Shown here in pieces: positions 4,186-44,090 of a DNA stretch of 64,000 bases; the first letter of the stretch is position 1; each line of letters starts with the position of its first letter. Source of the DNA: Macrostomum lignano (lineage: Eukaryota). The stretch is taken from NCBI GenBank assembly GCA_002269645.1, contig NIVC01002448.1, positions 1 to 64,000 of the forward strand. Direction: 5' to 3'. The position numbers and the translations under genes were made by a program. The notes under the pieces are model-generated. The model was not told where the DNA came from and searched no databases. It saw nothing but the letters and a program-made list of their open reading frames with translations.

Positions 4186-7100
4186 ATGAAGAAGGTTACA
4201 TCCGTCAAGATGAGCCTGAAGGAGAAGTTCAACAGAGGTCGATCGACTGGTGAGCAGCCTGATGTAATACGCAGTCGCTTGCACACTCCGCAGCCCTCAA
4301 AACGAGTGGCTAACTTACATGCATCTTTCGGTGTTCAGTGAAGAAAGCTTTTTATGCAACATTCTTGCTGCAGAAAAGAAGCATCAAGTAGGGCAGAAAC
4401 AAAAAATTGGCTCATTAAGCCGACTTGCAGACTTGTACTGAGTAAGCTTCTGCCATTTAGGCATTCACTTTTGTAGCTCGTATCGATCCCGACACTTCTC
4501 AGCTTGCTTGTTGCGTAAAAAGTAGTCCAGTTGAGCTCATGACCGTGTGGGGTTATAGTATCACTCTCACTGAAAATCATATCGAGATTAGTTAATCACT
4601 GTTATTGGGTGTTAATTTTCTACTCGTATGTTTAAGCATGTTTGTTTGGGAGCAGGGCTTGCCTGATAAAACTGCAGATTCTAATAGTACGCGATTCAAC
4701 GCGTTTACTGGTAAGTTTTGTAGGCTAATTTAGGCTAATTAAGTATTTCTCTGATTCTGAACGTTTCATACTATTGAGTAGTATGAAAGAAGGACTAATT
4801 TCACATGGAATTAGCAATCGGTATTTCAGCTTACTCTGACATCCTGTCAATTTAATCATCCATAAGCTGCCTCTTGTGAATCTATCGCAAATAAACACAG
4901 CGACTATCTGTCTGGATCTAATTAAATTGGCCTCAAAATACTCCAGTCATCAGTTTTTCAAACACACTTTCAATTATTCGTAGTGACTCCCAATTTACAA
5001 TTAAAACAGGTGGCAAAACCTAGGTTCGATGAGTCTGTCAGCAGTAGTACGATCGGCTGCCGAACACTTTGAAAACAGCGAAGCAACTATAAAAGTTATG
5101 GTCAAAGAAATATGCCTAACTCACAGCAATGTAGCCAGCCAGGTGGTGGATGCTTTATAGATGACGTAATAGGTGCATTGAGCTAAATATTAGCTGCATT
5201 CAACCTTGCTATACATGCTGTTGCTGGGTGCAGAAGTGGAGACATCTTAATAAGTGCACTATTGACACTGCATGTAGAACTACTTACAATTTCGTTATTT
5301 TAGATAGTAGCGAAGCTACTCATGACAAGGACCTCCGCACGGCCTGTCTGGGCCGACCCGTTGCTCTCGGCACGCTGTACGATGCGCGAAACGACCGCTT
5401 CATCACCGGGACCAAGCTGTGGTCGCAAGCCGCAAAGCTCAACATAACCAAAAGTCAAGTGGAAGTGAGTCCAACTCCAACTATAAGCATCGAAAAAGAG
5501 TGCACATTTTCGGACAAGGCGAAGCTGCTCAAACTCAGTCCGGATCTAAAGCTCGGCTTCCTGTGTGGCAACACCGAGGTCGAAGGCTCTGGTCGGTACC
5601 TGAACGACTCAAAGACCAGTCTCAACTCCGAGGAAGTCACTCTGGCCTACCGGATTGTCACAAGGTTCGACGAGCTGCACTTGGAGCCAAGTGGAGGCGT
5701 CGAGTTTCCACAACAGCTGGCGGACACCCCGGCGACCCATGTGGTGACGGGCATCAAGTTCGGAGCCAATGCCTTTCTCGTGTTCGAAAAGGAGAGAGAG
5801 CTGCTTGGCGAGGCCTCAGCGTCGGAAGAGAGTCTCGAGTCGATGGTGTCCGCTCTGAAAGCCGCCTTCAGTGAGTCCGACGCGCCGCCCAAGTACAGCA
5901 GCGACTTTGACGACAGCGTGTATGACAGGGTGAAGTGCCGCTACTTCGGTGACTTCGATGTTGAATCTCCACCGACGACCTTGCGAGAGGCGTTCGGCTG
6001 TGTGAGCAGGTTCTCAAGCGACAGAGCCAAGACTCCACTGGTGGCATACTTGACACCCCTGAGCACGCTTGGAGGCAAAGTGGCTATGCTGAAGCGGAAG
6101 ATCACGGATGAGCAGCTGAACGAAGCTGGCGACTATCTTCAGAAGCTCAATGATGTCATCAGCGCGGCCGAAACACAGCAACGAGTGCTGGCATCGAGTC
6201 CTTGGCAGACGCAGCGCGCAGAGCTTTCAGAGTTTGTAAACCTAGTTGAGAAGATGAAGACCAGATACACGGAAAAGCTGTTGAAGACTCTGCCAGGTGC
6301 TCGAGAGCACAAGAAAGGATGCGACAAAATCGCCAAGCTGTTGACCAATTACCGAGAAAATTCTCCGTTCGGACCCGCTCAACTTCTTGGCTGGATTTCA
6401 AATCGAGAGAGGGAGTGCATCGCTCTGCAGGCGTTGGCAGCTCAACTGAGTTCAGTGGGCATCAAGCTCATCAAGGATTCAATAGACAAACAGCAGTTTG
6501 AAAGTTCAGCCAATCAGAAGTTACTGGCTCAGCTGACCTTACCAGATGCATCTCCCTACCTGAAGGACTTGAGGCTTTTTCTGAATAAAGTGACTCATAC
6601 ATTTTTTGTGGAACGAAGCGCCGACACCTGGATTGACTCGGAAGATCATGACACGTTAAACAAACTCGCGAATGAGCTAATCGAAGTTGCCAAAAGAAAC
6701 GAATGCATCCTTGGTTCGCAGGTGGCTGTTGCTCTGGTAAGCGAGTCTACACGTAGCGACAGTAATCGGATCCAAATCACCAAGCTGTACAGAAAAGAGC
6801 AACAGTGGTGTCCTCTGGAACTGCCACTTGCACCGAAGAATATTGTGTGCGAAGAGATCAAATCTACTACGTCAAAGCTTTCGTGGTCAGCTGTGAAGTG
6901 TGACCTTGGTCTCCCAGTACATTACAGAATAAAAGTCTACCAGGCGAGCAAGAGCTCGAAGTGCTTGGTCTTCACAAAATTAACTGACAAAACGAGCATT
7001 GATATTCACGACCTCGAACCAGGCACAAAGTTCAAAGCCAAGATCTCGACGATGACTGCATTTGGCGACTCGGAGGAATCCAAGAGTGTTCACTTCGAGA

Positions 7101-8905
7101 CTAATCCTCTGAAGCTTTGCTCCGAGTACGCTCGTAAGGTCCTGTGCGAGTCAAAGCCGCTGAAGAAAGAGGGTGATAAAACTTTTCCTGGGGAGATTTT
7201 TCAGCTCAAGAAGCGCCTTCTAAAGCTGCCTGAGAGCTGCCATTGTCCCGAGGGCGACTGTAACTGCCCAGAGTCGTTTGATATTGGCGAGAGCAAGGAA
7301 AACTTGACAGAGCATTCAAAATATATGCTAGTCGTGGGCGAGACTGGAACGGGAAAGTCCAGGTTTGTCAATGCAATCGCCAATGCTTTCTATAAAGTGC
7401 AGTATAAGGATCCTTTTCGGCTTAGACTCATTTCTGAAGTTGATCCCAGCTCATTAGAGTCAAGCTCCACTGCCTCTAAGCGAATGAGTAAGCCCAATCA
7501 GGCTCACTCTCAGACGTCAAAGGTGTCAGTATACACCCTTCACCCGGTGGACACTTCAGGAGGATGCTGCTCTGGAAAGAGTGCTCTGGACTGCCCACTG
7601 ACTGTCATCGACACCCCGGGTTTCGGAGACACTCGGGGTTTTGAGGAGGATCAGAGAGCGGTAAAGAAAATTGCTCGAATTCTCGGAGAAGATAGCAGCT
7701 GCATCCCGAGAATGACAGGCGTCCTGCACGCGATCGGCTTTGTTGTGAAGGCGTCGCAGAACAGACTAACTGCGCCACAGAAGTATATCTTTAATCTCAT
7801 TTTGTCGCTATTCGCAAAGGATGTTGAGAAGTTAATTCTTCCGATCTTGACATTCGCTGACAGCGGTGAGCCACAGGCCTTAGCTGCACTCAGAGAGGAC
7901 AATGTACCCTGTAAAAATTACCAGAGCTTCAACAACGGTGTTCTTTTTTCCGACAACTCAGAATCAAAACCACAAAGTCATGACTGCTCGACTGAAGAGC
8001 GAAAACACCAAATGATGCTGAAGCAAAACCATCTCAACTGGGAGCAATCCTTTATAAGCTATGACGAGCTGTTCAATTGGTTGAAGCAGTCAGAAAGCGT
8101 ATCACTGAAAATTACTCGTGACGTTTTAAGACACCGTGACAGGCTGGAAAACGTGAAGGACCAGCTTCTATTCAAAGTAAATGCGTGTCTCGATCAAATT
8201 TCTTGCATTGAACAAGAGCTTGAGCTGGTAAAAACCTTGGACGCTGTGATCAAGGATGCGGACATGAACAAGAAACGAAAAGTGATGGTGCCGAAGAAAG
8301 TGAAGAAGATGACTCGACCAGGCCGCTACGCCATGATCTGCAAGGTCTGTGAGAACACCTGTCACAATGACTGCTCCAGGGGCCCCGAAGATATTCAGAG
8401 GAAGTGTCGGGCGATCACTGTTTTTGGCAGCTGCACTGTATGTCCGAAGAAGTGCAACTGGAAGGAGCACGAATCAGCCGATCATTATTTCGTGCACACC
8501 ACGCAAGAGGAACTTGTGGACGTAGAGACGATCTGTAAAAAGTACGAAGAGAGTGTGAAAGATAGGAAAGATAAAACGCAGCTGATTTCAGCCATGAGAC
8601 AAGATCTGAAGGAGAAGCACAGCGAGTTAACATACGACATCGTCACTATCCGCAAGTGTCTCAACGAGCTTGATAAATGGGCACTTCGGCCATGCCCCCT
8701 TAGCGTGGTCGAGTACATTGACAACCTCATCGCCAGCGAGGAGATGGAGCACAAGCCCAACTGGCAGGAGCGCAAGAAGTACTTGTTGGAGGCTCGCCAG
8801 TCTGCCGAAATCATCGCCCAGACCCGAGAAATTGAGGATCCATTCGGAGATAGGATTTCTGAGACACTGCAGCTGTGTGAGAGAGCCATAAGTGAAGACA
8901 ATTAA
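4186..8905 (+). CDS. Stonustoxin/neoverrucotoxin-like (MACPF-type) N-terminus + FN3 + septin/AIG1-like P-loop GTPase + Cys/His-rich motif + coiled coil (about 1220 aa)
   Basis: Exon 1 4186-4249 (MKKVTSVKMSLKEKFNRGRST, donor GTGAG, phase 1) joins exon 2 5304-8905 (acceptor TTATTTTAG, G+AT=Asp) in frame. SNTX-like start CLGRPVALGTLYDARND and ATHVVTGIKFGANAFLVF. FN3: LSWSAV..HYRI...LEPGTKFKAKI. G1 GETGTGKS (7337-7360), G3 DTPGFGD (7610), G4-region FVVKASQNRLT. CKVCENTCHNDC..CTVCPKKCNWKEH. Confidence 0.85.
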
Positions 8906-9801
8906 CGATCATCACGACAATTGACAATTTGTGACTAACTCGTTCTACTCTGGTTGTTTTCTTTTGCTTTGATATGGGACGGAATATTTGTGCTTGGGGA
9001 AATAAATTAACAAATGTTATTCGTTGATTTTCTTTTTTTAGCAAAGATAATTTATAATATAACAACTCTGCAAGTTTCTACTGTATTTCGCACTGGAAAT
9101 TAACTTTTAGGTAAGGGTACACTGCTTATGTGGCCTAAAAGTGTTGATTTTGGACCTATAGGCCTTGTAATGCCGGCCAATAATTTAAAATACTTGAATC
9201 CGATTTTAACAAGCCCACTATCTATTTGTCAGCAACGGGGATGCTTTAATTGACTTGAAAACTTAGTTTTTATTTTTCTACAGGGTGTTGGTGTATTGGC
9301 CTCTGGTTTGATGTAATTTTTTCTGGTCTTCTTAAACCGTTTTTCAGTTTTTTATTTACACTAGTCTTGCGGTACGAAGCCCTGGTCTATTTTCGATCAA
9401 CGCGTATTTATCTATCTCAAAACTTAACTCTATTTCATCGTCGCTTACTAAAGTCTTCTGTTCTCGTGACTTCATATATCGATGTACGCTCGTAAATGCA
9501 GTAATTTTGATGAATCCCAATTTAAAAGTAGCAATTCGCATTAAATGTGACCTTAAGCAAAACGTTTTTAAGAAAGTGGGACGATTTAATTAACCTGTAA
9601 AACGTAAATGACCCGTTACAAACGGGAAGCCTTTGCATGTAGGAGATGATTAATTGACCGACTGGCGGATTTATTTATTTATATAGTGACAAATATGCGT
9701 GCACGGTTCGGGTTACGCAGTCTATACTAGCTATGTTAGAACTTCAAACAATTGGCCAAACATCAAATTTAAATTGTTTTTTGAAACGTATCCAAATGTA
9801 T

Positions 9802-9961
9802 CCCTGATACGTATCCAATTTTTATGATCCTCTAAAGAATTAGCTCGTTTCTACAAAAATGGTGAACAGATAATGCTTTTATTTATTATTATTATTTATT
9901 CCACCATTTTTGTAGTAACGAGCTTCTTTAGAGGATCATAAAAATTGGATAAGTGTCAGGG
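9802..9961. repeat. Long hairpin / MITE-like inverted repeat (~60-bp arms, 37-nt AT-rich spacer)
   Basis: 9802-9864 is a near-perfect reverse complement of 9902-9961. Confidence 0.8.
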
Positions 9962-11273
9962 ACGTTCCTGCAACCAAAAAAGTTACGTATCGGAGACGTC
10001 CAACTTTCTATTGGATACGTAATTTTGCTATGCGGGCACCCTGATCTGCATGGTTTTCGATTTAAAGTTTATATTCTCCACTTCTCGATCGTTTTGAGGT
10101 TCCTTTAAGCTTTTAACCTGTAGCTGAACTCAGTTAAAACTCAAAAGTCTCCCATCAGCTTGGAATGTGAATTTTTTATCTGAAGTGGCTTCGCCGTCAA
10201 GTGGCCCACTGCTTTGTTTTAGTGGCGTCATACTTTCAACTTACTAAAAATTTCATCTTTAAATTTCAGTGATATTGAATGGCTTTGTATAGTACTAGCT
10301 GCTTTAGTGATTTAGGACACCTTTTTTTCACTTGCCCTTTTCCTAAACTTTTATTTGTCGTTAAGTATTTTAACCATGTGGTCAACCATCTGAAGATTTT
10401 ATTTTTTGGATTCTTAAAACTCGTTCACACCGGCAATCAACTAAAGTCATCAATCATCAAACACGCCATTGATGTACTCGTACAAAGCGACGGAAAAATA
10501 TGGACAAGCTGTGTGATCACTCTAAGTTTGGCTTTATTTGATAGCTGTGGGAACGAGCTTTTAATCTTATTAAATATATATTATATATTTAACTAGTAAA
10601 ATGAGTTGTTTCTACGTCGGTATCTATAGGTATGCGGTTGATTTCAGAAAAAACGGCTCAACCGATTTTCACCAAATTTGCACTTTTTGATCCGAAATTT
10701 TCCCCTGACGGTACATGTATCCTGGCTAAGTATTTTTTAACTATAAATGTATGTTTATAAACTATATATTCATGCTAAACTTCCTCAAAATACAAATTGG
10801 TATCAAAGTTTTCTCTGCTAGTACATGTCGTCATGATGCGCACCTCCTTACCATTTACTGGATTTTTGTCTTCGCACTCATCACAAAATACCAACAATGC
10901 ATGTCAACAAGTATTATTGTGTCCAGGAGTAGAACTGCTAGCCGAGTGGGTTAGCTTAGAGTTCTGTTAGGTTTGGTTCCAGATTTCACTACTTTGATAC
11001 GGCAGCAGCTCTGAGCTAGGCGCGGTAGAAATATATGTACATGTACGGGGTTGGAGTTGCGATCCTCAAAAGTACCGGCACTGTACCAGCTGTACACGTA
11101 CAGCCATCGGATGCGCCACGCAATTGCAGCACGTGAGCACGTGAGAGCCTGGCCACCTTGCAGCTATATAGTGGGTCAGATAAAGAATCAGCGCTCAGTT
11201 CAGTCTAATCGAATTGACTTTCCGAAAGCGCTCGAGATTATTGAGAAGTTTTTGGTGTGACGCCATACATGTA

Positions 11274-11486
11274 ATTATAAATTAGCACATACATGTAATT
11301 ATAAATTAGCACTTACGTGTAATTATAAAGTAGCACATACATGTAATTATAAAGTAGCACATACATGTAGTTATAAAGTAGCGCATACATGTAATCATAA
11401 ATTAGCACATACATGTAATTATACATTAGCACATACGTGTAATTATAAAGTAGCACATACATTTAATTATAAAGTAGCACATACAC
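11274..11486 (+). repeat. Tandem array, 24-bp unit CATACATGTAATTATAAATTAGCA, ~9 copies
   Basis: Periodicity is directly visible. Confidence 0.9.
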
Positions 11487-11934
11487 ATGCATTTGCACTG
11501 ACGAGCAATCTTTGACTCTCAGGCAGGTGTGCCCCGGAGCTGCACTCTTACCCCACCCATAAGTTGTTTACCCAGCCCCGTTTTGTCTCGCAACCCCCAT
11601 TTGTCTGCCCCAGCTTGATGCGCACCCAGTCTGATTGGCTGGGCTGCCCCCTGACGTTCCCCCCAATTATCTCTGGCCCAGCTGCGCCTCAACTTGCTAC
11701 GATAATATTATGTTGTTTTTGCGATCTATGCGTGGCCAATCGGTTTTGGGTGTAACGGTGAAAATATACGTATGAATAAGTTTGCGGCAGGCGAGGGACA
11801 CCGATCCCTCGAAACACTTGTCGCTATCAGGAAAACCCCACGCGCTCTTTCTCGCCCGGCCATGATTAGTAGACGAAGCGTCAATTCAAGACGAGTGAGT
11901 GATTCTTTCGGGAAAAGTCTGCTATTGTGGATAC

Positions 11935-12754
11935 TGTCACGTTATTGGCGTAGAGGTTATGACCCTTAAAAGGGCTGTTTGACGAGAATTGTCGTAAGTT
12001 GTTGTAGTCCCAAAATGAATCGAAGTCAGTTCTTGCGAAGCGGATTGTGTAGCGGAGCACTTGGTGTATAAGGGCAGGAAACTGCCGTAGCTAGTTTATT
12101 GTCGAGATCAATATTAGACTGGTTAATGTCAATACAAAACTTATAGTGTTCTGGGCACTGGCGGCTGCAACAATGGTTTTGAAAGTGATTAGAATATGAA
12201 GTCGAGTGGCAGGCGAAGTGAGTGATGGCGACGCAACGTAGTGAGTGATGGCGATGAGCACAGTGGAGGCAGTGAGTAGTAAGTAAACAGGCAGATAAGT
12301 AGCGGTGAGAGTGGCGTTAGCCGTGGCAGTACACAGTGGAGTACAGTGTGTAAACAGGCTGGCCCAGACAGAGGAGCCATGGCGAGAGATAAGGAGGCTC
12401 GAGGCAGCCAGGAGAGAGAAGGAAAACGAGAGCCAGACGCCCGAAGCCAGAAGTGAGGAGGCCCCAGCCCGCCGCCAGGCGGGGGTTAATAAAGAGCGCA
12501 GAAAGGTTAGCATAAAACACGGAGAGTTTTCATTGGCTGGCGAGGGAACTTGAAATTATCGATCGTGCTAAAATTTACAGACGAACGCAAGGTCTACCAA
12601 ATACACAGTGAATTAGCAATTGATACAGATTATTTGCACGCTACTACAAGTAAACGTTAAAATAAACTATTGGAGAAATTTAAATGAGAAATTGCAAGGG
12701 AAACTATAGTCCAACGGCCCTTTTGCAGGACCACCTTAAACTAGCAACGTCACA
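11935..12754 (-). mobile_element. Solo LTR (same family as 62794-63599)
   Basis: Termini TGTCACGTTAT...CAACGTCACA. 4-bp direct repeat ATAC on both sides (11931-11934, 12755-12758). Reverse-complement homology to 62794-63599 along its length. Confidence 0.75.
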
Positions 12755-16039: not shown

Positions 16040-17960
16040 CACATTTAATTATTTTTTTATAGTTTTAATAAAATTTGAAGGAAGTTTTAACGAAGTTTTA
16101 ACAAGTTTAGCACTCTTAAAAAGTTTGCTAAGTGGATTGTAAGTAAAGGGGGGCTAAGCTTAAGCTTAAAAGTAAGCTTATAAAAGGTTATGGTTATAGG
16201 GTTAGGGTTTAGGGCTAGTGATTAGCAAGTTTGTTTCACCATGTTCATTTGGACTAGACTAGGCATCATAGTAGTGCACCACCTAGAAAAGTAGGCCTAT
16301 ATTGCCCAGGCCAAAGACCCCAAAGTGTTGTGCGAGTGGCAACAGTGCCATAGAAACTCATCTAGGTAGGTGTCAAACAGCCTTTTGGATGTGCATGCAG
16401 AAGTTTAAATATTTATTCACAACTAAAGACAGTTTTTTATAAAATAATTAAGCATATAAAATTAGAAGAGTGCTATATTATATTCATTGGCGTTGCTAGG
16501 CTGGTTTCAATTCCAACCTACTTTAACAACTGTTGACAAATGAATTTTTGGCAAAAGTCAATAAGGGCAAAAACTATTTTTGCAGTCACCATTAGCCTAA
16601 AGCAAGCCATTTTGGTGAACAATTTATTAAGAATTAAAAAATTGAAAAATGGAAGTTCTTGCTTAAACAGTCAATGTTATATAAAGTGTAAATGTAAAGG
16701 CAATATAATAAAGTATATTTCTTTTAGTTATAGGTCCTAACCAATTATTTTATATTTAAAAAGCTTGTATACTTCAAATTTTAATAAAATTCAAAATTTT
16801 TATTTTCAACAAGCCAGGTCTTGCCTTAGCTTTGTTAGTTTGGTCATACTCAACTCATAGTTTGAAAACTTAGTTTAATATACTATTAATTCATAATGAC
16901 TTGCTTATAAAAGTGACTTATCTAAATGTCTTATTACCAAAATGACTTACCAAACTAATATAAAAAATAAGTTATAAATATATTTTTTCCTTTTAACTTT
17001 AAGTTTAATCAAGCCAAAGCCAGAGGTTAAGGTTAGCAAAATTATATAACTTTTTTCTCTATAAATATAATTATTTAATTGAATAAACCAAAATATTTTA
17101 TCATAAAAGGCCTACTTCTTTTTTACTCATAAAATATTAAAAAATTTAAGATTATTTTTAGCCTTAGGTCTAATCTTTTATGGTATATATAATATATATT
17201 CTTTGTCATAGCATTAGACCATATCATTATTTAACTAAGTGATCTATTATTAGTATTAATATTATTTTTTACAGTAGTAAGAGAATTTGGCTCAGGCAAT
17301 TAGCCTGTTTGGCCAATATATTATAGAGCTATGTATTTTATTATAGAGCTATGTATTATCTAAGACCTTTTTAAATTATTGAATAATATGCTAGAAAATC
17401 ATATTCTTTTAATTTAATTTCCTAGTCTTTACATAGACTTTTTAAAAGCAAAGGGCTATATATGCCTTGTTACAATTTAGGTGAAATTGTTATAGAAGCA
17501 ATAAGAGGCATCACTGCTCATTCTGCCACCCTCTCCCCTAAATAGAGATGGAAGTGCATGGAAATATACATAGTCATATGCACAGGCATACAGGACTGTA
17601 CAGTAGCCCTAACTTTATCATTAGACATACTCTTCACTATGCCTTGGGGTAATTCCATTAACAGACCCAAGCTAAGATTCAAATTTGAGAGTGCTGCCCT
17701 AGAGCACTATGCTATAGCCATCCAAGGCCTGGGCTTTGAATTTATAATAAACTAGATAGCTAAACTAGGTGTTAAAGGCCAGAGGCATCTGCCATCAATA
17801 TTCCTTATGTAAAAGAATACCTTTGCAGACATACCAATACAGTGTATTATTGGAAATGCTTTTGTCCTTACTGTCTCCAATCATTTAGATAATAGTCATT
17901 GATTTGCCAGGAAGATTCCTCTGACAAAATGTTTTTCTAGTTACTATTGAAATTCTAAAG
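16040..17960 (-). mobile_element. Heavily decayed, CpG-depleted element, possibly Merlin/IS1595-type DNA transposon
   Basis: Minus-strand translation near 16330-16395 gives TSKRLFDTYLDEFLW, resembling the C-terminal YLDEF.WR motif of ISXO2-like/Merlin transposases. The rest is riddled with stops. No CpG from 16493 to 17980. Confidence 0.35.
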
Positions 17961-18191
17961 AAAATGATGAGAAATACTCTCGCATCGCTACTGACATCAG
18001 TAGTTAAATGAATTTTTTAGTGTGGCATTTTTTACTGAATCCTCCTGGCCTTCCAATTGGTTGCCAGTCAGTGCGGGGGTGGGCTGAGTGCGAACCCTCT
18101 TACTTATTGAGCCAGCACGGGCATTGCTGACCGGAGTCCAGCTCCTCCACCGCCGCCACATCTCGCACCTCAGCCAAGCACAACCAGCCAG

Positions 18192-21100: not shown

Positions 21101-21232
21101 TCCGACTTTGAGCGCCTGCTCGGACCCTGCGTGGAGGTGATGCAGCGGAACATTGACGCCTACAAGAAGCAGCTGAGCGACATCTTTGGCGACGAGGCTG
21201 GCAAAGCCGCCCTGGCCAGGGCTGCCGTGTAG
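18192..21232 (+). CDS. PRKAR2: cAMP-dependent protein kinase type II regulatory subunit (3 exons, 406 aa)
   Basis: Exons 18192-18926, 19834-20073 and 20987-21232, all phase 0 with GT-AG boundaries. RII D/D domain [18 protein letters not shown]. Inhibitor site RRRVSV. Two cAMP cassettes [16 protein letters not shown] and [16 protein letters not shown]. Confidence 0.95.
18990..19405 (+). repeat. Intronic minisatellite, 16-17-bp unit GCCAGACAGGTAG(GCA/ACAA)
   Basis: Visible periodicity in PKA-R intron 1. Confidence 0.9.
20064..20795 (+). repeat. Intronic minisatellite, ~23-bp unit GGAGATGCAGGTGAGGCTGGGAT, ~30 copies
   Basis: The first unit spans the exon 2/intron 2 junction (ATGCAG|GTGAGG at 20073/20074). 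Confidence 0.92.
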
Positions 21233-29904: not shown

Positions 29905-30840
29905 AATGGCACCCCTGTAATGGCACCCCTGTAATGGCACCCCTGTAATGGCAACCCTGTAATGGCACCCCTGTAATGGCACCCCTGTAATGGCACCCCT
30001 GTAATGGCACCCCTGTAATGGCACCCATGGAATGGCACCCCTGTAATGGCACCCCTGTAATGGCACCCCTGTAATGGCACCCCTGTAATGGCACCCATGG
30101 AATGGCACCCCTGTAATGGCACCCCTGTAATGGCACCCCTGTAATGGCACCCCTGTAATGGCACCCCTGTAATGGCACCCCTGTAATGGCACCCCTGTAA
30201 TGGCACCCCTGTAATGGCACCCCTGTAATGGCACCCCTGTAATGGCACCCATGGAATGGCACCCCTGTAATGGCACCCCTGTAATGGCACCCATGGAATG
30301 GCACCCCTGGAATGGCACCCCTGTAATGGCACCCCAGTAATGGCACCCCTGTAATGGCACCCCTGTAATGGCACCCATGGAATGGCACCCCTGGAATGGC
30401 ACCCCTGTAATGGCACCCCTGTAATGGCACCCCTGTAATGGCACCCCTGTAATGGCACCCCTGTAATGGCACCCCTGTAATGGCACCCATGGAATGGCAC
30501 CCCTGTAATGGCACCCCTGTAATGGCACCCCTGTAATGGCACCCATGGAATGGCACCCATGGAATGGCACCCCTGGAATGGCACCCCTGTAATGGCACCC
30601 CTGTAATGGCACCCCTGTAATGGCACCCCTGTAATGGCACCCCTGTAATGGCACCCATGGAATGGCACCCCTGTAATGGCACCCCTGTAATGGCACCCCT
30701 GTAATGGCACCCATGGAATGGCACCCATGGAATGGCACCCCTGGAATGGCACCCCTGTAATGGCACCCCTGTAATGGCACCCCTGTAATGGCACCCCTGT
30801 AATGGCACCCATATAATGGCACCCATGAAATGGCACCCCT
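29905..30840 (+). repeat. Tandem array, 14-bp unit TGGCACCCCTGTAA, ~66 copies
   Basis: 14-bp period. Variant TGGCACCCATGGAA is interspersed. Confidence 0.97.
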
Positions 30841-31726
30841 AAAATGCCGAACCCCTAAATAAGAATATCTAGGTGTCATTGATTCAAAAACACGAATTAG
30901 CTTTTGGAGGATGCAATTTGATGTCCGCACTGAGGCGCAGTGCTGATTGACGCACAGGCTGTATTGAAGCTCTTACACCATGCATGAGAGTAGCAGCTCT
31001 TCTGGTAGCATCGTTGAATATCTCGCCGGTCAGTGGGCTTGGCGAATTGATTCTTGTTTGAAAAGATGCTCAAGAAAACATTAATCCGTGTCCTTAATTT
31101 TTGTGCATAGCCGGGTTGCTCCGTTCCGATGCTAGCAAAAGTGCAAGCGTACTATCATTTCAAAAATAGACGTGGCGTGTTTCAGTTCCAGTTCCAATGA
31201 GGAACTTCCACAGTAGGGAAAACAAATATAATAGCTTCAGCTTTTAAAACGCACATTTTTGTTTCTGCTTTTTCGACTCATAATAGCCTACCTTGAGTAC
31301 CGTGAGTACGCAAAGCAAAATTAAAAGGGAACTTCAATAAGCTACATGTACAGAGAACATGTACTCTCCAAACTATCAATCTCTCCTCCGCCAAATATCT
31401 TCATTTCTAAATCCCTCTCTAAAAATAGCACTTGCATCTCTTGTTAGAAAAATAAGGAACGTCGTGGATCTACTAGCGTATAAAACGGGGTGGGCACTGA
31501 TTCAATTGGGCAATTGAAGCGCGCTTTTAACTTTGGTTAAATGGTGCGCTTCTGAAGACTCTAAAATCAGCATAGAATCGCCTGCACAGTCGGTGAGTTC
31601 GGCAGAATTTGCTTCTGCATTGCTGCTTTAAGTGTGGCACATTGCTCCACTATGAAACAATTACCCCTTGTTTTTACTGGTGATGGAAATCCCAACTATA
31701 AACAGCCTACTGTTTAGAGTAAACAG

Positions 31727-32465
31727 CCCTCAACTCATAGACAACCCCCAACTCATAGAAAGCCCTCAACTCATAGACAGCCTCCAACTTAAAGACAGCC
31801 CCAACTCATAGACAACCCCAACTCATAGGCAGCCCCAACTCATAGACAACCCCCAACTCATAGGCAGCCCCCAACTCATAGACAGCCCTCAACTCATAGA
31901 CAGCCTCCAACTTAAAGACAGCCCCAACTCATAGACAACCCCCAACTCATAGACAGCCCCAACACATAGACAGCCCCAACTCATAGACAGCCCCCAACTC
32001 ATAGACAGCCCCAACTCATAGACAGCCCTCAACTCATAGACAAACCCCAAATCATAGACAGCCCCCAACTCTTAGACAACCCCCAACTCATAGACAGCCC
32101 CCAACTCATTTACAGCCCCCAACTCATAGACAACCCCCAACTCATAGACAGCCCCCAACTCATAGTCAGCCCCCAACTCATAGTCAGCCCCCAACTCATA
32201 GACAGCCCTCAACTCATAGACAGCCCCCAACTCATAGTCAGCCCCCAACTCAGAGACAACCCCCAACTCATAGACAGCCCCCAACTCATAGACAGCCCCC
32301 AACTCATAGACAGCCCTCAACTCATAGACAGCCCCCAACTCATAGACAACCCCCAACTCATAGACAGCCCCCAACTCATAGACAGCCCTCAACTCAAAGA
32401 CAGCCCCCAACTCATAGACAACCCCCAACTCAAAGACAGCCCCCAACTCATAGACAGCCCCAATA
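31727..32465 (+). repeat. Tandem array, 17-18-bp unit CCCCCAACTCATAGACAG, ~40 copies
   Basis: Visible periodicity. Confidence 0.95.
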
Positions 32466-32814
32466 CAGAGACAGAATTTCATTCATGTGCTTTGCTCGGC
32501 TGTGTGGGCAACTCGGCTCGAATTTTTGTGGTGTTGATTGCTTTTACATCCTTTCTTTATTTTGACATGACGTCAAGAAATTTGCTTAAAAGATTGATGC
32601 AACCGTTTCTCGCTCACCCATTTCGTTTCGTTTCGTTCGCTTCCCTTTGCCTCTTCTTGGCCCAGTTGGCTACAAAAAAATCGGCATATCCCCGATGACC
32701 TAAAAAAATATAGAACGGCTTTGCCGTACGTAACATAATTTAATAGCATGAGTTACGAAGTAAATTGTAAGAAAAATTGACAAATGCGTTTCTCACTTCA
32801 GGTAGACAGTCACA

Positions 32815-34763
32815 ATGAGTCAAAAAGTCAAGCCAAATTCTGTGGATAAACTAAAATATGAATTGCTGCTTTCTTCGCGGAAGCTCAGCGATGCAGAGCC
32901 AGTTGAGTACGAACTGCAAATGGACCAGACAGCATGCGATGAGAAATACCAGGTTCGGAAAATGGAGCTCGGTCGCAAAGATCCAACTTCAGCTGTTGAA
33001 GAGAAGGTGATCATGATGGTTGGTGAAACTGGGTCGCTGATTAATTCAATGGTCAACTACAACTTTGGACTGAAGTTCGAAGACAATTATCGCTTCAGTA
33101 TTAGCCCCGATTCCAAGGAAAAAAGCCAGCAGAAGTCTCATTCAAAAAGCCAGACACAGTGGGTCACCTCCTATACATTTCATCACCGCGAGGGCTGCCA
33201 GCAGCCATTCACTCTGACGCTGTTGGACACTCCTGGGTTCGGTGACACTGGCGGCATCGTGAAGAAGAAGAAGAAGAAGAAGATTGTAGCTCGAATTCGG
33301 GAGTTCTTTTCTTCTCCAGCTGGCGTCGATCATCTGGACGCTGTGGGCTTCGTGGTGCCGTCTGGTGTCACCAGGCTGACATCGACCAGCGATCCGTCTA
33401 TGACGCGATAATTTCCCTCTTTGGGAAGGACATTGGCGATAACATCTTTGTCATGATCACTTCCGCCGACGCTAGCGTCCCACCGGTACTGGAGTCGCTC
33501 AAAGAAGCGGGTATCGTGTACAAGTCGCACACCAAGTTCAACAATTCGGCTGTGTTTGCCAAAAGCCACGAAATGGATTCCAAGAGCCAGATGTTCAACA
33601 AGATGTTCTGGGACGTGGGAATGCAGAGCTTTAAGGACTTCTTTTCTCAGTTAAACAAGACAGAGGCCAAAAGTCTGACTCTAACAAAAGACGTTCTGAC
33701 TGAGCGTCAGAGATTGCAAACTCACTTAATTGCCATCAAGAACGAGATCCACTTAGGTATCAGCGCTCTTAACCAACTGGAGCGTGAGATAGATGTAATA
33801 AAAAGTCATCGAAAAGATCTGAACCGGAACAAGAACTTCACCTACACGGTTGTTGAGGAAAATAGGGTAGAAGAAGCTATTCCTCCAGGACATTACATCA
33901 CAAACTGTCTGAACTGCAACCGAACCTGTCACTATCCTTGTGCTATTCCGGTAGACAGTGACAAAGCAGGCTGTGTTGCAATGTCTGATGGCATATGCCG
34001 CGAATGCCCAGGGCACTGTGTGTGGTCGGTGCACAAGAACAGGCAAAATCGGTTCATTTTTGTACGGGAATCCGTCACGAAGACTTCGGAAGAGTTGAAG
34101 AACCGCTACACCGATGCGCAGGGCAAGCTGTTGACAGCCAGCCAGTTAGCGGAAAAAGTCTACGGAGATTATCTGCAAACCGAAGCCAAAGTGATGCAGC
34201 TGATTAGCGAGAGCACAAAGTGCCTTAAGAGACTGCATGAGATTGCTCTGAAGCCTGATCCGCTGAGTGAGGTGGACTACATTGACAAGCTGATTGAGGC
34301 GGAGGACATGAATAAGCGTGAAGGATACCCTGAGCGAATCCAGCAGCTTAGGGATATTAGAGAGCTCGCGGCCCGTGCAGAGAACTTGAAGAAAGATGAA
34401 CTGATGCAGGTGCTGCTGCAGAACGAGACGAGAGTGTACCAGAAGTACAAGGATTTTTTCCAGAAGCCGAAAGCCTCTCTGTTGTCTCAAGCCGGGTCAT
34501 GGTTCAAGTCCAAGCGGCCAGGTGGTTCAAGTTCACGAGACGAGAGTGTACCAGAAGTACAAGGATTTCTTCCAGAAGCCAAAAGCCTCTCTGTTTTCTC
34601 ACGCCGTGTCATGATTAAAGTCCAAGCTGCCAAGTGGTTCAAGTTCACGAGACGAGAGTGTACCAGAAGTACAAGGACTTCCTCCAGAAGCCGACAGCCC
34701 CTCTGTTGTCTCAAGCCACTAGCTTGCTGCCATTGTTCAAATCCTAAGGTGGGAATTTCGTAG
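32815..34763 (+). pseudogene. Septin/AIG1-like GTPase + Cys-rich + coiled-coil paralog with P-loop deletion and one frameshift
   Basis: ATG 32815 follows an acceptor at 32801. The P-loop reads VGETGSLINS (GKST missing). G3 DTPGFGD is intact. A 1-nt loss at ~33387 (ACC^AG) separates RLTST from the QRSVYDAIISLFGKDI frame. Cys motif CLNCNRTCHYPC..CRECPGHCVWSVH is homologous to the 4186-8905 protein. Confidence 0.7.
34424..34717 (+). repeat. Triplicated 112-bp unit at the 3' end of the GTPase paralog
   Basis: CGAGACGAGAGTGTACCAGAAGTACAAGGA starts at 34424, 34536 and 34648. Confidence 0.9.
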
Positions 34764-36589
34764 CACTCGGTTGTTAAAGTGAAGACTGTGTTTTCGGTGT
34801 AACGGAACTGGTTCTTGTTTTTACATCTGGCATGTTTTTTTCCTTTTACAAAAATCTGGTCTTAAAAAAAAGCAATGTATATTTTACTTGAACTTCACTT
34901 TTTTCTAGGGTACCTGATGTCTAAGCCAAGGCAACTAGAATCATATCTTTTTAGTACAACTACACGTTTCACAAACATCTTTTCCTACTTAATTTGGCTG
35001 CTTAATCTAAGAAACTAAAATTTAATGCTACAATACTCTAATTTTACTACGAGTACTACGTACTAATATCCTATGTCGCTACTATACGTTCTACTATTCA
35101 CTACCCAGTTACTATAAGCTCTTTTTGTTTACTGTATCCATATTATTTAACTGTATCCTCTTTAATTGCGTATTCAGAAACCAAGAAAAGCAAAATTTTT
35201 ATATAGGCGTAAAAATTTGGCATGTGTAAAATCTTGACAGGTGTAAAATCTTGGCACTTGTACTTGTAAAATCTTGGTGCGAGTTGACCTTCGCCAAATA
35301 TATTGATATCACTCGGTACAAGAAAGTTTCTTAATTAGCACAACTGCAAAGATGTATTCTACAAACAATAAGTGATTAGGAGGCTTACTAAAAATCGAAG
35401 GAGCTGTTCGGAAGTCTTATATTACGCTTTTCTTGCGTTTGTGATTTAATGTAACACCTTGTTTTTTATTCAAGCTTGTTTCTCTTGTTTTTGTTTCTAG
35501 CATGTTTTTCATATTTTGTTTCTACACAATTTTGTTTCAGTTTGTTTATGTTTGTTTGTTTCTTGTTTGTCTCTTTCTGCTGAACAAAAATATTTATCCT
35601 GCTCTGCCTTATTCGCGCGGTGTTTCACATAACCAGAATATTATGTTTTATACGAGCGTACGAGTACTTTAAGTTCATAACGATTACTATTTTATCCTCA
35701 GTAGTCTCTCGCAAATATTTATCCAGCTAAGAGGTTAAATTAAGTCTGTTGCTTCTGTTATATTTTTGCTGTGTTTTATTATTTTACTCAATGTTTTCAT
35801 AACGAATTAGAGGACGAAATGAAGTTGGCTATATAAATTAACTGCTTTAAAATCTATCCAATAAGTTAACGAGTTAATGTATCCAGTAGACAGCAGTGAA
35901 TTGACTATTTTATTGGCTGAACTACTACCTTTTTTCCAATATCCTTGCGTCCAACTTTCCTCAAATATATTTGATTACATCTATCAAGCTTGTTCAATAC
36001 ACTTGGCTTATTTTTTATGCCGGCACTACGTACGAGTACTAAGATCGTACTAAGCTTTGAGTAAGCTTTAGGTTTTTGTGTTATTGCGTCACAATCGTAT
36101 GCAACTGTACCTACGGTAGACCAAGGTCTAAATTTTTTTATTTAAATTCAGATTGAGTTTTCAAAAGTTTAAATGCTAAACATGCATGCAGTACGGTGTC
36201 TTGCACTTTCGTTGAAGGAGTCACTGCAGTTCTGAATTTTTGCCGTGAGCTGTCTGCAGTCTGCAGCTGAAGGAGAAAAGCTGGTTTGGTGAAACCAATT
36301 TTCACAGATTGGAGGTTGCTGGTTGGCTGAGGATCAGCTATTATCGCTACCTTTTAAGCTTAACCTGCTTGTTTCTTGCTTTTCAACGGATAAATAAATA
36401 TATGGCTAAATCGATCGTACAGAGCCTACTATGATTGGAGGCTTTTCAGCTACACTTACTGATACGATAGCAAAGCATCAAACTGCAAACTCATAAAATG
36501 AGCACACGGCTACATTCAGATTAAAAACTTCAAACTTCATTCCTTCAAGAAACTAAACTGATATTTCTTTCTTGCCCTTCCTGCATTTT

Positions 36590-40368: not shown

Positions 40369-40529
40369 TCTAGACATATTACAGATCGCAGACCATCTAG
40401 GTAAATAAGTAAAAAGCTCTAGATAGCTTGGGGGGAATCGCTGAGATGTCACCGCAAATAAAATTCACACGAATAATTTTTGTCCCTTGCCTATTGGCCG
40501 CCCCAAGCGGGGCGGCACCAGATTGCTAG
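40369..40529 (+). mobile_element. Short non-autonomous Helitron-like element (3' end well defined)
   Basis: Perfect hairpin GCCGCCCC-AAGC-GGGGCGGC (40497-40516), then 9 nt, then CTAG|T (40526-40530). Candidate 5' A|TC at 40369 is tentative. Confidence 0.5.
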
Positions 40530-40668
40530 TTTCTACTAACTCCATTCACTCAAATACCACAACCGCAGGATTCGATTGAGTCACACCGAACCGGCGTACC
40601 GGTCTGGACGCTTTCCAAGAAACAGTCCAGCGGCCATCAGCGCACTGATTTTTGACACCAGATTAACA

Positions 40669-41948
40669 ATGGCTGAAGGAGGTTTCGATGAAATACGAGT
40701 AATTTGATTTATTTTTGTTCCTTGATTGTCTAGTCAACATGCTAGAAAATAGAACTGACATTGATACATTTAATTTTGCAGAAATTGGTCGAGTTAGTCA
40801 ACAAAGGTGACTTCCAACAGATAGTGCACTTATTGAAAGCAAGTAAGAAGAAGACTGTCCTCATGCATTTGGCCGAAACTGCTCAGCAGAGATCGGCCGG
40901 AACAGAAAAGTGCGTAATGTACTTATTTGCTCAGAACTTTGACCCTTTTGCAACGACCGGGCTGGCGACACGGCTGCTCACCTGGAAGCCAGAGCTGACA
41001 ACCTCCAGATTCTTGTACTGCTGCCGTTCGAGAGCAAGTGGCTGCAGAACGAGCAGGGCGCGACCCCCTTGATGGAAGCGGTTCGGGCTGATTCGTGGAG
41101 GTGTGCCAAGCACCTGTTGCACCAGCTGCGGCAATCTAAGTACAATGAATGCCTGAGTAAAGGAAACTCCAAGAGAGAGCAGCTTTTGGGACTGAAAGAC
41201 AAACACGGTCAAACAGCGTTTTCACTCGCCAAAGGTGCCATAGCCAATCTCATTGAACGGTTAGTTGTTTGTACTACTGATAGATAGATGTAAATGTTGA
41301 AATCATCAATAATAGTCACACTTTCAGTCACAAATTAAATTCAGAGAGATGAGACTCGTCTTTGATAAGTACGGTTTGATCAGCGGTCTGACTAGTGAGG
41401 TGAGTGCCTGACAGGTGGGGTGATAAAAGGACAGGCCTTACTGCACCGCATTCTCCACTGCAGGAGCAGGCAGATCGGCAGAGGCTGGAGCAGCTGGCTC
41501 AAGCTGGTGACTTCGAGGGCCTGCTTAGAGCTGCCAATCGTGACAACTGCGACCTGCCTGACCCTAATGGATTCACCGCAGCAATGTGGGCCGCCAACAA
41601 TATCAACTGCAGCAACACGGATTTGTGGCAGAAGCTGCTGTCACGGGCAGACCCAACATGCGCCTCTACTGCGTCGTTGAGCTGCCTGCATGTGGCAGCT
41701 CGCAGCGACAACTCGGACGCCGTTTTCGCCCTAATAGACGCAGGAGCCTCCGTAAATTTTCAGGACATCTATGGCAACACGCCTCTCATGGCGGTCGCCG
41801 TAGAACCTCCTGCACCAGCCTTAGAGGTCGGGAGCATCCTGCTGGGGAGAGGTGCCGATTGGAGCCTGAGGAACGAGTATGGCAGAACTGCATTGGATTT
41901 GGCGCAATTCAAAGCCGAGGCATTTCAGCTGGCAGAGATGCTCGCCAA
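40669..41948 (+). CDS. Ankyrin-repeat exons (about 5-6 repeats), with one lesion in the model
   Basis: Candidate exons 40669-40698, 40782-40842, 40935-41259, 41345-41399, 41464-41948. Ankyrin motifs GDTAAH, GATPLMEA, GQTAFSLA, GFTAAMWAA, SCLHVAA, GNTPLMAV, GRTALDLA. In-frame TGA at 40940, or a missing T in TTTT at ~40946-40949. Ends at a strong donor AA|GTGAGT. Confidence 0.65.
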
Positions 41949-42386
41949 GTGAGTCAGGAGATTAGACTTCCATTCGAACTGTCAAGTGGGATCGCTATAA
42001 GAAGTAAATTATAAATAAGAATGCGTTCAGCTTGCAGATCATAGAAAGAATTGTAATTTTTAGTAAGCCAGTATCATGGCGCCTGGAAACAGAGTCAATG
42101 TCTGCTAAATTTCAGATACGACGGCACGCCGTATTTTGAAGTGGACTGCAAAGCGCCTGTAAGTCGCTCTTGTTAATCTCTTGCAGATATTTGCCAAACC
42201 CCACAGCCAGGAAACTGACTCAATTAGCTATCGTCCTAAGAAACTTGAGAGTAGGAATGAAAGCGCATTTGTAGGTTTAAGACCACAATAAATTCCGTAG
42301 GGAAAGCAAAAATCATTTTGTGCTCATTCGAGTTTTAGGGGCTACAAAACGAAACTAGCCGAATAGTCTCTAACTGGAATCCGCAG

Positions 42387-44090
42387 ACCGACTCAATGGG
42401 CCCAGTCAAGCTCAGCATCCCAGAAGCCGAGACAGATGCAACTTGTTGCTTTCAATTTGTTCGAGACAGCTACAGCTACAAAGACTCAACTGGGAGTGGA
42501 GCGAAATTTTCCGGTGATATTTTCAATCTGAATGTGGTGAAGAAAAATGATGACTCCAGCGTCGGTCCAGTGTCATTCAGCGTTGCTGAAGGCGGAGCTT
42601 TCGTCATGCCTCCAAAGATTCTTCTCGTTGTCGGCTTAGAAGACTCGGGATTGACCGAGTTTATTAACGGAATCGCCAATGCATTCTACAGAGTTCCGTA
42701 TTCCCAAAACTTCCGGTTCTGGCTGGCTCAAGAAAGAGGTGAAAGAGACATAATTGTGTACACATTATTCCCTGTGAACACTGGCGGTGCCGATGGAAGC
42801 TGCAGGAGCGCTATGGACACCCCGCTGACACTTATCGTTGCGCCAGAATTTAGAAACAGACTAAACCCGAACGAGGGAGATCAAATTCATAAGAAAATCG
42901 CAGAGGTGCTCGGCGATGGAGGAACTTCTGCAGTGCCAGGCGTCACCGGACTGTTGCACGGCATTTGCTTCGTCCTGAAGGCATCGCAATACAAACGTAC
43001 CGATTCTCAGATAACCGTTTTTAAAGAAATTACGTCACTGTTCGGCGAGGAAATCGAACAGATCTCGCTGCCAGTTTTGACTTACACTGGAGGATATGCG
43101 AATTTTGCACACCCCGATCTCAAAGACGGCAACGTGGCATACAGAAAGTTTTTCAAGTTCAATAGTGGAGTTCTGTACTCTGATAATGTCGACAGTGGTA
43201 GCTCGAAGCGGGATTCAAATCTCTCGTTAAAAACAAAACTAGAAGAGAAGATGCAGCTGGATGCAAAGGCGAGAGCCTGGGATGAGGATGAGCACAGTTA
43301 CCTTGAGCTGTTTGAAGCGATGGAAAAGACACGAATCGGTGTGCGTCTCCGATCGAAGCAAAAAGCCAAAGACAGCCCAAGTAATCCAAGACAACTCGAG
43401 GTTTCCCTTGCACTCCTGATGAAGGAGCTGACAGAAACCTTGGAAAAACTTGCCATATTTGAGAAGGAGCTAGAGCTAGTCAGTAAAACAGCTGGCAACC
43501 CAGGCAAAACTAAATTCCTGGTGAAAATAATGCAAAACTCAAATTCAGAATTGCCCAGAAACCAAGTTGCTATAAATTGCAAAAAGTGCAACATGACGTG
43601 CTGCATTTTGGAGCGATCGGCACATTGGAGAGATCAGCCACAGCAGGAAATCGACTGCACAGCCTGCCCAGGAGGTTGCAGTCTCTCTGAGCATAAGCCA
43701 GGCAAGAAATATTTAGAAACCGTCGAGAAAGAAGAAGAGAGGACAGCGGAAACCATCACACGGCGGTATCCCGGTAAACGGCGTAGAAAGCAGGTCGAAA
43801 GCCGTCTCAAAGTCGATATAGACGAACACAGGGAGCACTTATCAAACAGCTTAGTAAAAATGCACAAATGCATGCAAGTTCTTGAGCAGCTGGCCCATCG
43901 CCAGTACCTGCTAAGCACTGCCGATGAGTACGTTGAAGAGTTGATAAATAAGCAAAAGCAAGAAGAGCAGCGAGACTGGCAGACTCGGGCGAGGCTTCTG
44001 CGAGACGCCAAGAAATCAGTGGAAGAAATCACCCAGATTCGAGCCAGCGGGGCAGCGGGAGGAGCAATAAAGAAAGCTGCAGAAGAATGA
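42387..44090 (+). CDS. Degenerate (pseudo-)GTPase paralog + Cys-rich + coiled coil, open 564-aa frame, probably the last exon of the ankyrin gene
   Basis: Collinear with the GTPase half of 4186-8905 (YTLFPVNTGG..SAMDTPLT vs YTLHPVDTSG..SALDCPLT; GVTGLLHGICFVLKASQ vs RMTGVLHAIGFVVKASQ). G1 is GLEDSGLT and G3 is IVAPEF. Acceptor CCGCAG ends at 42386. Confidence 0.75.
   Translation, partial: TDSMGPVKLSIPEAETDATCCFQFVRDSYSYKDSTGSGAKFSGDIFNLNVVKKNDDSSVGPVSFSVAEGGAFVMPPKILLVVGLEDSGLTEFINGIANAFYRVPYSQNFRFWLAQERGERDIIVYTLFPVNTGGADGSCRSAMDTPLTLIVAPEFRNRLNPNEGDQIHKKIAEVLGDGGTSAVPGVTGLLHGICFVLKASQYKRTDSQITVFKEITSLFGEEIEQISLPVLTYTGGYANFAHPDLKDGNVAYRKFFKFNSGVLYSDNVDSGSSKRDSNLSLKTKLEEKMQLDAKARAWDEDEHSYLELFEAMEKTRIGVRLRSKQKAKDSPSNPRQLEVSLALLMKELTETLEKLAIFEKELELVSKTAGNPGKTKFLVKIMQNSNSELPRNQVAINCKKCNMTCCILERSAHWRDQPQQEIDCTACPGGCSLSEHKPGKKYLETVEKEEERTAETITRRYPGKRRRKQVESRLKVDIDEHREHLSNSLVKMHKCMQVLEQLAHRQYLLSTADEYVEELINKQKQEEQRDWQTRARLLRDAKKSVEEITQIRASGAAGGAIKKAAEE

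Follow-up and report, generated by a model that had tools for sequence, protein, structure and literature searches.

We analysed 64,000 nucleotides of the genome of the flatworm Macrostomum lignano (positions 1 to 64,000 of contig NIVC01002448.1, assembly GCA_002269645.1; hereafter the window), in which three homologous units, each a GTPase domain (G domain) followed by a coiled coil, lie on the plus strand. With each unit used in turn as the query, tblastn found exactly three of them in the window, at a mutual identity of 22-31%. Copy 1 matches the other copies far beyond chance (E 3e-59 and 3e-49), with 31% identity to copy 3 and 29% to copy 2. That is, the three same-strand units claimed by a first-pass annotation of this DNA are real. 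Only copy 1 carries both motifs of an active P-loop GTPase (G1, GxxxxGK[ST], and G3, DxxG).

Copy 1 consists of two exons on the plus strand. Exon 1 (4186-4249) opens with an ATG at 4186 and holds 21 codons plus 1 nt before a GT donor at 4250. Exon 2 (5304-8905, AG acceptor at 5302-5303) encodes a stonustoxin (SNTX)-type MACPF domain, a helical domain, an FN3 domain, the GTPase, the coiled coil, a cysteine (Cys) cluster and C-terminal helices. The spliced product of 1221 amino acids (aa) is open throughout and collinear with the M. lignano protein P0001, one of the numbered homologs used here for comparison. The copy 1 product itself has no entry in the protein collection searched. Pfam matches exceed their cut-offs for MACPF_SNTX (PF24674, 31.2 bits against 27, profile positions 6-158 of 301), Stonustoxin_helical (PF21109, 30.7 bits against 27) and fn3 (36.9 bits against 25); no match to Thioredoxin_11 (PF18078) or SPRY was found in Pfam, and no signal peptide was seen. 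All G motifs are intact, with GETGTGKS at 7337-7360, DTPGFGDT at 7610-7633 and TFAD at 7850-7861, so that the toxin-FN3 composition and the P-loop given for this copy in the first-pass annotation stand as described. Over the GTPase and coiled-coil part, the ratio of non-synonymous to synonymous substitution rates (omega) between copy 1 and P0001 is ~0.10, a sign of purifying selection. Given this ratio and the intact motifs, we take copy 1 to be functional and predict it to be the catalytically competent form, located in the cytosol.

Over their whole length copy 1 and P0001 share 73% identity, but their synonymous divergence (dS) differs sharply between modules. In the toxin module dS is 0.20 over aa 23-445 and 0 over aa 145-204, whereas in the FN3 and GTPase parts, where omega is the ~0.10 given above, it is saturated (~1.6 to >2). 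The break lies near aa 445, as seen when window positions 5304-6630 are compared with L003 11040-12400. A duplicate contig, L004, matches the beginning of the window (L004 10001-13787 and 16711-23787 correspond to window 1-6993 at 99.3%) and carries a fourth family member, the toxin-FN3-GTPase P0002, ~3 kb upstream of the window start; the cluster therefore extends past the window. Because low toxin dS stands against saturated dS downstream, and because a gene of the P0001/P0002 type lies upstream in L004, we take copy 1 and the gene in tandem with it for old paralogs, between which the toxin module was recently homogenised or exchanged. The dS contrast places the gene-conversion tract between the toxin module of copy 1 and the upstream tandem paralog at 5304-6630 on the plus strand.

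Copy 2 (32815-34763, plus strand, ATG at 32815) is a standalone GTPase and coiled-coil unit. All three frames are closed directly upstream of 32815, and hence it has no N-terminal module. Its P-loop reads GETGS----LINS (33022-33045), where the two closest intact paralogs have GETGSGKTTLINS; this deletion of four residues removes the G1 motif, while G3 is kept as DTPGFGDT (33226-33249). TFAD has become TSAD, and an (AAG)n insertion adds seven lysines (K7) at 33262-33282. The first-pass annotation had recognised both the missing N-terminal module and the in-frame loss of four P-loop residues; it had missed a frameshift, a 1-bp deletion in a CCC run at 33385 on the plus strand, which became apparent from comparison with the duplicate contig of the window, L002 (NIVC01003337.1). 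Between window 32500-36000 and L002 there are no substitutions at all, and the sole difference is an extra C in L002, which thereby retains an uninterrupted frame of 649 codons. The deletion at 33385 probably either arose very recently or is an error of PacBio sequencing in a homopolymer. Inside the 3' end of copy 2, repeat detection and alignment to an intact paralog located a 112-bp tandem repeat of 2.6 copies (34423-34717, plus strand).

This intact paralog belongs to L005 (NIVC01002140.1), a segment paralogous to the window, whose flanks are homologous to window 29070-32046 and 32788-35897. L005 holds a toxin-FN3-GTPase gene of the P0008 type (9200-12690) and, ~5 kb downstream, a standalone gene of 571 aa (17917-19632) which shares 84% identity with copy 2, its GETGSGKTT and TFAD being intact. 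We had considered copy 2 as an N-terminally truncated form of P0010, which has 476 extra residues; the intact standalone paralog in L005 led us to reject this. The L005 toxin gene itself shifts frame just after DTPGFGDT (~11428), and its model is shortened to 485 aa. At the syntenic spot the window lacks a toxin-type gene and has instead an 18-bp satellite of 41 copies (31723-32461, no strand assigned).

Copy 3 combines ankyrin repeats with a GTPase that has lost its motifs. Two 5' ankyrin exons on the plus strand (40669-41259; exon 1 at 40669-40698, exon 2 at 40782-41259) were placed by comparison with L002, and three internal ankyrin exons (41345-42158, plus strand; 41345-41399, 41464-41948 and 42116-42158) by exact spliced mapping of P0004. 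From motifs and fold prediction, the last exon (42387-44090, plus strand), which is preceded by four annotated ankyrin exons, encodes the dead GTPase, the coiled coil, a partly kept Cys cluster and C-terminal helices; it contains an open reading frame (ORF) of 564 aa at 42396-44090. The product is 100% identical to the M. lignano GenBank entry PAA57762.1 (BOX15_Mlig023044g1, 824 aa), whose gene spans 41072-44090 of NIVC01002448.1 in GCA_002269645.1, and Pfam matches to Ank_2 and Ank were obtained on P0009. In place of the P-loop, copy 3 has GLEDSGLT (42633-42656), in place of DTPGFGDT it has VAPEFRNR (42837-42860) and in place of TFAD it has TYTG (43080-43091), and a loop of 23 residues containing SQT is deleted. 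With GLEDSGLT at G1 and VAPE at G3, neither motif of an active P-loop GTPase is left. The same dead motifs occur identically in P0004, P0005, P0006 and P0009, that is, in four protein models from two assemblies. In all these respects (degenerate P-loop, absent DTPG, 564-aa frame, ankyrin exons upstream) copy 3 is as the first-pass annotation had it. Relative to L002, a 1-bp deletion at ~40953 breaks the frame in the 5' ankyrin exon, which accounts for the later start of the deposited model (41072, not 40669) and for its length of 824 aa against the 932 aa of the duplicate.

The assembly in which these lesions are seen was built from PacBio reads with Canu and polished with Pilon; the M. lignano genome is highly redundant and repeat-rich, and the assembly holds ~180 Mb of duplicated blocks at at least 95% identity (PMC5730564). 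Could the lesions be artefacts of such a duplicated PacBio assembly, all three genes being intact GTPases? The homopolymer deletions at 33385 and ~40953 are absent from the near-identical duplicates, and the L004 duplicate of copy 1 carries a 1-bp deletion of its own (at the equivalent of window 6357) together with a 75-nt insertion. Each frame-breaking homopolymer deletion is the sole or nearly sole difference from a duplicate contig of >99% identity. All three 1-bp deletions (33385, ~40953 and the L004 equivalent of 6357) probably go back to errors in the PacBio consensus of duplicated regions, and frameshifts in this assembly are therefore no evidence of pseudogenes until the reads have been checked. 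The motif losses are of another kind. The 12-nt P-loop deletion of copy 2 is in frame, is found in two contigs and is not a typical error type, and the changes in copy 3 comprise multiple substitutions plus the 23-residue loop deletion, common to the four models from two assemblies. We therefore regard a purely artefactual origin of the lesions as hardly credible.

To which family do these GTPases belong? With copy 2 as query we retrieved >1,000 animal homologs at ~40-45% identity from sponges, cnidarians, molluscs, crustaceans, echinoderms, fish, amphibians and reptiles, mostly unnamed or carrying the UniProt label 'Septin-type G domain-containing'. In the core alignment GxxGK and DTPGxG are invariant and the Cys/His set is nearly so. 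The core profile matches septin G domains (E 1e-7), with a PDB septin match of only ~100 residues. An AlphaFold2 (AF2) model of the copy 1 core (predicted local distance difference test, pLDDT, 86) shows a G domain, a long helical hairpin, a beta-rich Cys domain and terminal helices, and Foldseek ranks GIMAP7 (3zjc), Toc34 (1h65) and GIMAP2 first, with septins lower. Matches of the predicted models to 3zjc, to GIMAP2 (2xtp/2xto) and to GIMAP1 (3v70) reach a probability of 1.00 at target-normalised template modelling (TM) scores of ~0.4-0.55, with E values of 1e-7 to 1e-5 for the G domains of copies 1 and 3, and thus indicate a GIMAP-like fold. The copy 3 model (pLDDT 78) likewise matches GIMAP7, GIMAP2 and GIMAP1.

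Profile searches gave a different picture. For AIG1 (PF04548) copy 1 stays below the cut-off (24.6 bits against 27, profile positions 49-158 of 212), and Pfam shows no AIG1 match for copies 2 and 3; some relatives pass narrowly, but over the first ~125-128 positions only (P0010 with 29.0 bits, P0107 with 36.9). For Septin (PF00735) copy 1 (21.1) and copy 2 (22.0) both remain under the cut-off of 26.2, their matches being limited to profile positions 7-76 or 7-91 of 280, and no septin unique element was detected. No copy or relative matches IIGP (PF05049) in Pfam, and among the copies and relatives NACHT/NB-ARC gave sub-threshold, P-loop-only matches, none of which reaches the Pfam cut-off. The module of ~300 aa after the G domain (coiled coil, Cys cluster, helices) corresponds to no Pfam family. 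On the predicted models, we place the family in the septin/Toc34/AIG1 ('paraseptin') group, although it falls short of what Pfam requires for either AIG1 or Septin. No open paper on this architecture or family emerged from literature searches combining stonustoxin/MACPF with GTPase/AIG1/GIMAP, and the GTPase family itself appears undescribed. One homolog, P0056 (1010 aa, 42% identical to copy 2), comes from a metagenome-assembled genome of Roseofilum sp. SID1 and is labelled cyanobacterial; it groups with the sea-anemone protein P0066 at 94% bootstrap, a finding explained either by horizontal transfer or by host DNA in the metagenome bin.

Neighbour joining places copy 2 with the intact P0010 and P0011 (100% bootstrap), while copy 3 forms a long branch with P0005 and P0006 that is sister to the intact copy 1, P0001 and P0130 (100% bootstrap). 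An exhaustive search of the representatives with copy 3 revealed no dead clade outside M. lignano; the nearest relative is an intact toxin-FN3-GTPase at 37% identity. The P-loop pattern fails in only ~3 of the 135 representatives that keep DTPG, and both G motifs are present in 118 of the 120 best matches to copy 2. Since the lesions differ, fall in different clades and have intact sisters in each, copies 2 and 3 were inactivated independently, in agreement with the earlier proposal.

Copy 3 nests within the toxin-FN3-GTPase clade yet bears ankyrin exons, and its position in the tree suggests a toxin-clade core whose N-terminal part has been swapped for ankyrin exons. Across animals the same core is fused to SNTX helical/thioredoxin domains, FN3 arrays, SEA domains or tandem G domains, or to nothing. 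Together with the dS contrast in copy 1, these findings bear out the idea of modular shuffling on a common GTPase scaffold. The three copies are old, distant paralogs rather than a locally co-evolved set.

We then looked at how the two inactivated copies have evolved. Against its L005 paralog, copy 2 shows a dS of 0.147 and an omega of 0.54; polarised by P0010, 38 changes fall on copy 2 and 11 on the L005 sister (p 1.4e-4), a 3.5-fold acceleration. Using a site-class test, we compared whether substitutions avoid family-conserved sites in the G domain and in the rest of the protein, with an intact paralog pair as control. In the G domain of copy 2 conserved sites were hit as often as others (13/101 versus 9/54, p 0.63), whereas outside the G domain they were avoided (1/92 versus 14/122, p 0.0025), a result stable at conservation thresholds of 0.4, 0.5 and 0.7. 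The intact control paralogs avoid conserved sites in both parts (p 4e-6 and 1e-6). For copy 3 with P0005 and P0006, compared as proteins, analogous values were obtained: 4/44 conserved versus 25/140 other sites in the G domain (p 0.24), and 1/47 versus 38/242 in the coiled-coil, Cys and helical part (p 0.009).

The open frames point the same way. Under neutrality, the probability of encountering no stop is ~0.025 for copy 2 and ~0.03-0.06 for the copy 3 paralogs. P0004 and P0005 align gap-free over 575 aa at 9% divergence, and neutral simulations of this pair give a stop in 94-97.5% of runs. As far as substitution patterns can tell, the C-terminal module is under purifying selection and the G domain relaxed in both dead lineages. 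A relaxed G domain with a constrained tail fits retained pseudoGTPases, and the features that define such proteins are found here: the motifs are lost, the fold of copy 3 is predicted to be kept and selection continues. From the motifs, copies 2 and 3 are predicted to be no longer able to bind nucleotide canonically. Copy 2 would then be a pseudoGTPase kept for its tail through most of its history, its present status being uncertain. The first-pass annotation had named neutral evolution and lack of transcription of copies 2 and 3 as damaging to its proposal; neutrality was not borne out, given the C-terminal constraint, and as to transcription, the GenBank model of copy 3 is derived from transcripts, while copy 2 has no model.

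Our preferred reading, held tentatively, is that of a mixed cluster of an animal-wide GTPase family, in which copy 1 is active and copies 2 and 3 are retained as pseudoGTPase subunits or adaptors. A number of observations weigh against it. Copy 1 has no deposited gene model. The three copies are interspersed with unrelated genes. For copy 3, the retention of the fold in the AF2 model is driven by the alignment, and the selection tests used protein models of the older assembly rather than DNA; the sole DNA-based estimate, a ratio of non-synonymous to synonymous differences per site (pN/pS) of 0.38 for the ankyrin exons against L002, comes from only 18 substitutions, and in the GTPase exon window and L002 differ by only 1 non-synonymous and 0 synonymous changes, too few to be informative. 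For copy 2, the deletion at 33385 splits the window frame into ORFs of 198 and 436 aa, the 112-bp repeat swaps the native C-terminus for an out-of-register tail of ~70 aa, no gene model is deposited at the window or the L002 locus, nor for the intact standalone paralog in L005, and omega in the copy 2 lineage is ~0.85 against ~0.24 in its sister. Copy 2 may already be dying.

Much of this evidence also belongs to another explanation, which we consider rather unlikely: an ordinary cluster, produced by tandem and segmental duplication in a fast-turnover family, in which copies 1 and 3 have unrelated jobs and copy 2 is a young pseudogene whose frame is open by chance. The high omega and the 3.5-fold acceleration of copy 2 are in line with it, as are the P-loop deletion, the microsatellite insertion, the repeat-derived tail, the frameshift in the window, the lack of a model at either duplicate locus and the redundant, repeat-rich genome (PMC5730564). 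Taken alone, an omega of ~0.85 would suggest a pseudogene, but the site-class pattern runs counter to this, as neutrality of the whole gene predicts otherwise than a constrained C-terminal part (p 0.0025) beside a free G domain. An open frame by chance would be a rare event at a no-stop probability of ~0.025, and over 3.5 kb nothing but the frameshift sets the window apart from a duplicate with an intact frame. The absent models are uninformative, since the intact L005 paralog has none either; the GenBank annotation was built from RNA-seq transcript assemblies from which non-coding and repeat-overlapping transcripts had been filtered out (PMC5730564). A plain pseudogene caused by the frameshift, which had been a candidate status for copy 2, was downgraded after the L002 comparison and the site-class test.

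Downstream of the three copies, on the minus strand, lies a superfamily 1 (SF1, Upf1-like) helicase gene (46520-58777, 1824-aa model) with clear matches to AAA_11 (E 1e-10) and AAA_12 (E 6e-16). Its C-terminal PARP match is marginal (E 0.004, 27 residues), so that of the 'helicase-PARP' neighbour in the first-pass annotation the helicase is solid and the PARP part doubtful; the label rests mainly on the helicase. A Cys-rich ORF piece within this gene (48895-49326) has no Pfam match. Between copies 1 and 2, on the plus strand, we found exons of a housekeeping-type gene, a cAMP-dependent protein kinase type II regulatory subunit (PKA-RII; RIIa and cNMP_binding domains, 18111-21229). A 203-aa WSC-domain ORF at 442-1053 on the plus strand (E 1e-11; 93% in L003, 99% in L004) is not on record as a called gene. 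With PKA-RII and WSC genes among the copies and a marginal PARP match, the immune gene neighbourhood once suggested for this locus is weakly founded. Minisatellites lie between copy 3 and the helicase (23 bp x61 at 44748-46140) and upstream of copy 2 (14 bp x24 at 30500-30840), and a low-complexity repeat at 60262-62227 gives rise to spurious ORFs of 460-600 aa.

How might active and dead family members act, if copies 2 and 3 are retained pseudoGTPases? MACPF/CDC toxins must oligomerise for pore formation. By analogy with fold relatives, GTP-dependent dimerisation of the G domain, together with the helical stalk, could gather copy 1 monomers, and the gathered monomers would then be licensed for MACPF oligomerisation on the target membrane. 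Copies 2 and 3 would be retained for their C-terminal stalk/Cys module, copy 3 also for its ankyrin repeats, and would serve as nucleotide-independent subunits or adaptors through this common module; in this role they may either enter assemblies of active family members or act as scaffolds for other partners. The analogy for the first step lies in GIMAP and Toc34, whose G domains dimerise with GTP (PMC8201404), and it is only by such analogies that pore assembly gated by GTP, or an interaction of the copies with one another, is suggested.

A more specific arrangement builds on the proposal of the first-pass annotation: a sensor/executor set in which copy 3, and perhaps copy 2, would hetero-oligomerise specifically with copy 1 or its neighbour and gate pore formation, as in paired NLRs (nucleotide-binding leucine-rich repeat receptors) or in the GMS and GKS classes of immunity-related GTPases (IRGs). 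The C-terminal module is indeed conserved in both dead copies, copy 3 stems from the same clade as copy 1, the genes are physically clustered, and a toxin-type and a standalone gene are paired in L005 too. Fold relatives form heterodimers, as GIMAP2 and GIMAP7 do (PMC8201404), and septins have pseudoGTPase subunits (PMC10731463). However, L005 and the window are paralogous segments, and the adjacency of toxin-type and standalone genes was therefore inherited rather than independently evolved; the toxin-type gene beside copy 2 has moreover been lost in the window. Copy 1 is only 31% and 29% identical to copies 3 and 2, it has no deposited transcript model, and a nucleotide-dependent partnership through the G interface is unlikely for copy 3, given that its G1, G3 and G4 motifs are all gone. 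On balance, we judge a specific sensor/executor set improbable. Slightly more improbable still is a general version, in which the GIMAP/septin-like family would be a GTP-gated platform for cytosolic MACPF pore-formers, and in flatworms two pseudoGTPase adaptors derived from it, an ankyrin 'sensor' and a standalone 'cap', would co-assemble through the coiled-coil/Cys module and control the pores. If true, this sensor/executor immune module would have a paraseptin scaffold in place of an NLR.

GTPases of the GIMAP- and septin-like kind have links to immunity and to membrane remodelling, and how they work is poorly understood. The signature common to both dead lineages, a relaxed G domain and a constrained tail, points to the C-terminal module as the bearer of a nucleotide-independent function. 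Since M. lignano is transgenic and amenable to RNA interference, it is a tractable animal for the question whether dead subunits regulate a GTPase-coupled pore-former. Even if the dead copies were inert, the locus would be a clean case of gene conversion limited to one module of a multi-domain gene.

Compared with known systems, copy 1 resembles the toxins stonustoxin and neoverrucotoxin at its N-terminus, which passes the MACPF_SNTX and Stonustoxin_helical cut-offs, and neither it nor they have a signal peptide. SNTX continues with thioredoxin-like and PRYSPRY domains, whereas copy 1 continues with FN3, the GTPase and the coiled coil, and pore formation by copy 1 is only predicted. Vertebrate proteins that join the SNTX helical, thioredoxin, FN3 and GTPase parts are known as database models only (salmon P0003, lizard P0102). 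In concept, the proposed sensor/executor set also resembles GMS/GKS IRGs and paired NLRs, where a degenerate NTPase paralog regulates, or senses for, a nearby active effector. But GMS IRGs keep nucleotide binding, unlike what the motif state of copies 2 and 3 suggests, and paired plant NLRs are typically head-to-head, whereas copies 1-3 lie on the same strand, 6-24 kb apart, with unrelated genes between them.

For the GTPase core, Toc34 and Toc159 are among the top structural matches (1h65, 3bb1); like the core, they fall in the paraseptin clade, and their dimers form through the G interface. They are, however, membrane-anchored receptors of plants without toxin, FN3, ankyrin or Cys-cluster modules, at 14-17% identity. 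The best structural match of the G domains of copies 1 and 3 is to GIMAP/AIG1 proteins. The likeness takes in a P-loop, DTPG and a helical extension behind the G domain, and GIMAPs likewise form a clustered, lineage-expanded family, one associated with immunity. In a GTP-dependent manner, they assemble into homodimers, heterodimers and scaffolds (PMC8201404). In contrast to the M. lignano proteins, they lack MACPF/FN3 or ankyrin fusions, and the M. lignano core adds a tail of ~300 aa without a Pfam family. Septins show profile likeness over only ~70-100 N-terminal positions of the G domain. Among them, pseudoGTPase subunits have arisen repeatedly and remained part of hetero-oligomers (PMC10731463). 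Most of these subunits retain nucleotide binding, while copies 2 and 3 are without the P-loop lysine; even so, septin pseudoGTPases are the best precedent for the two inactivated copies.

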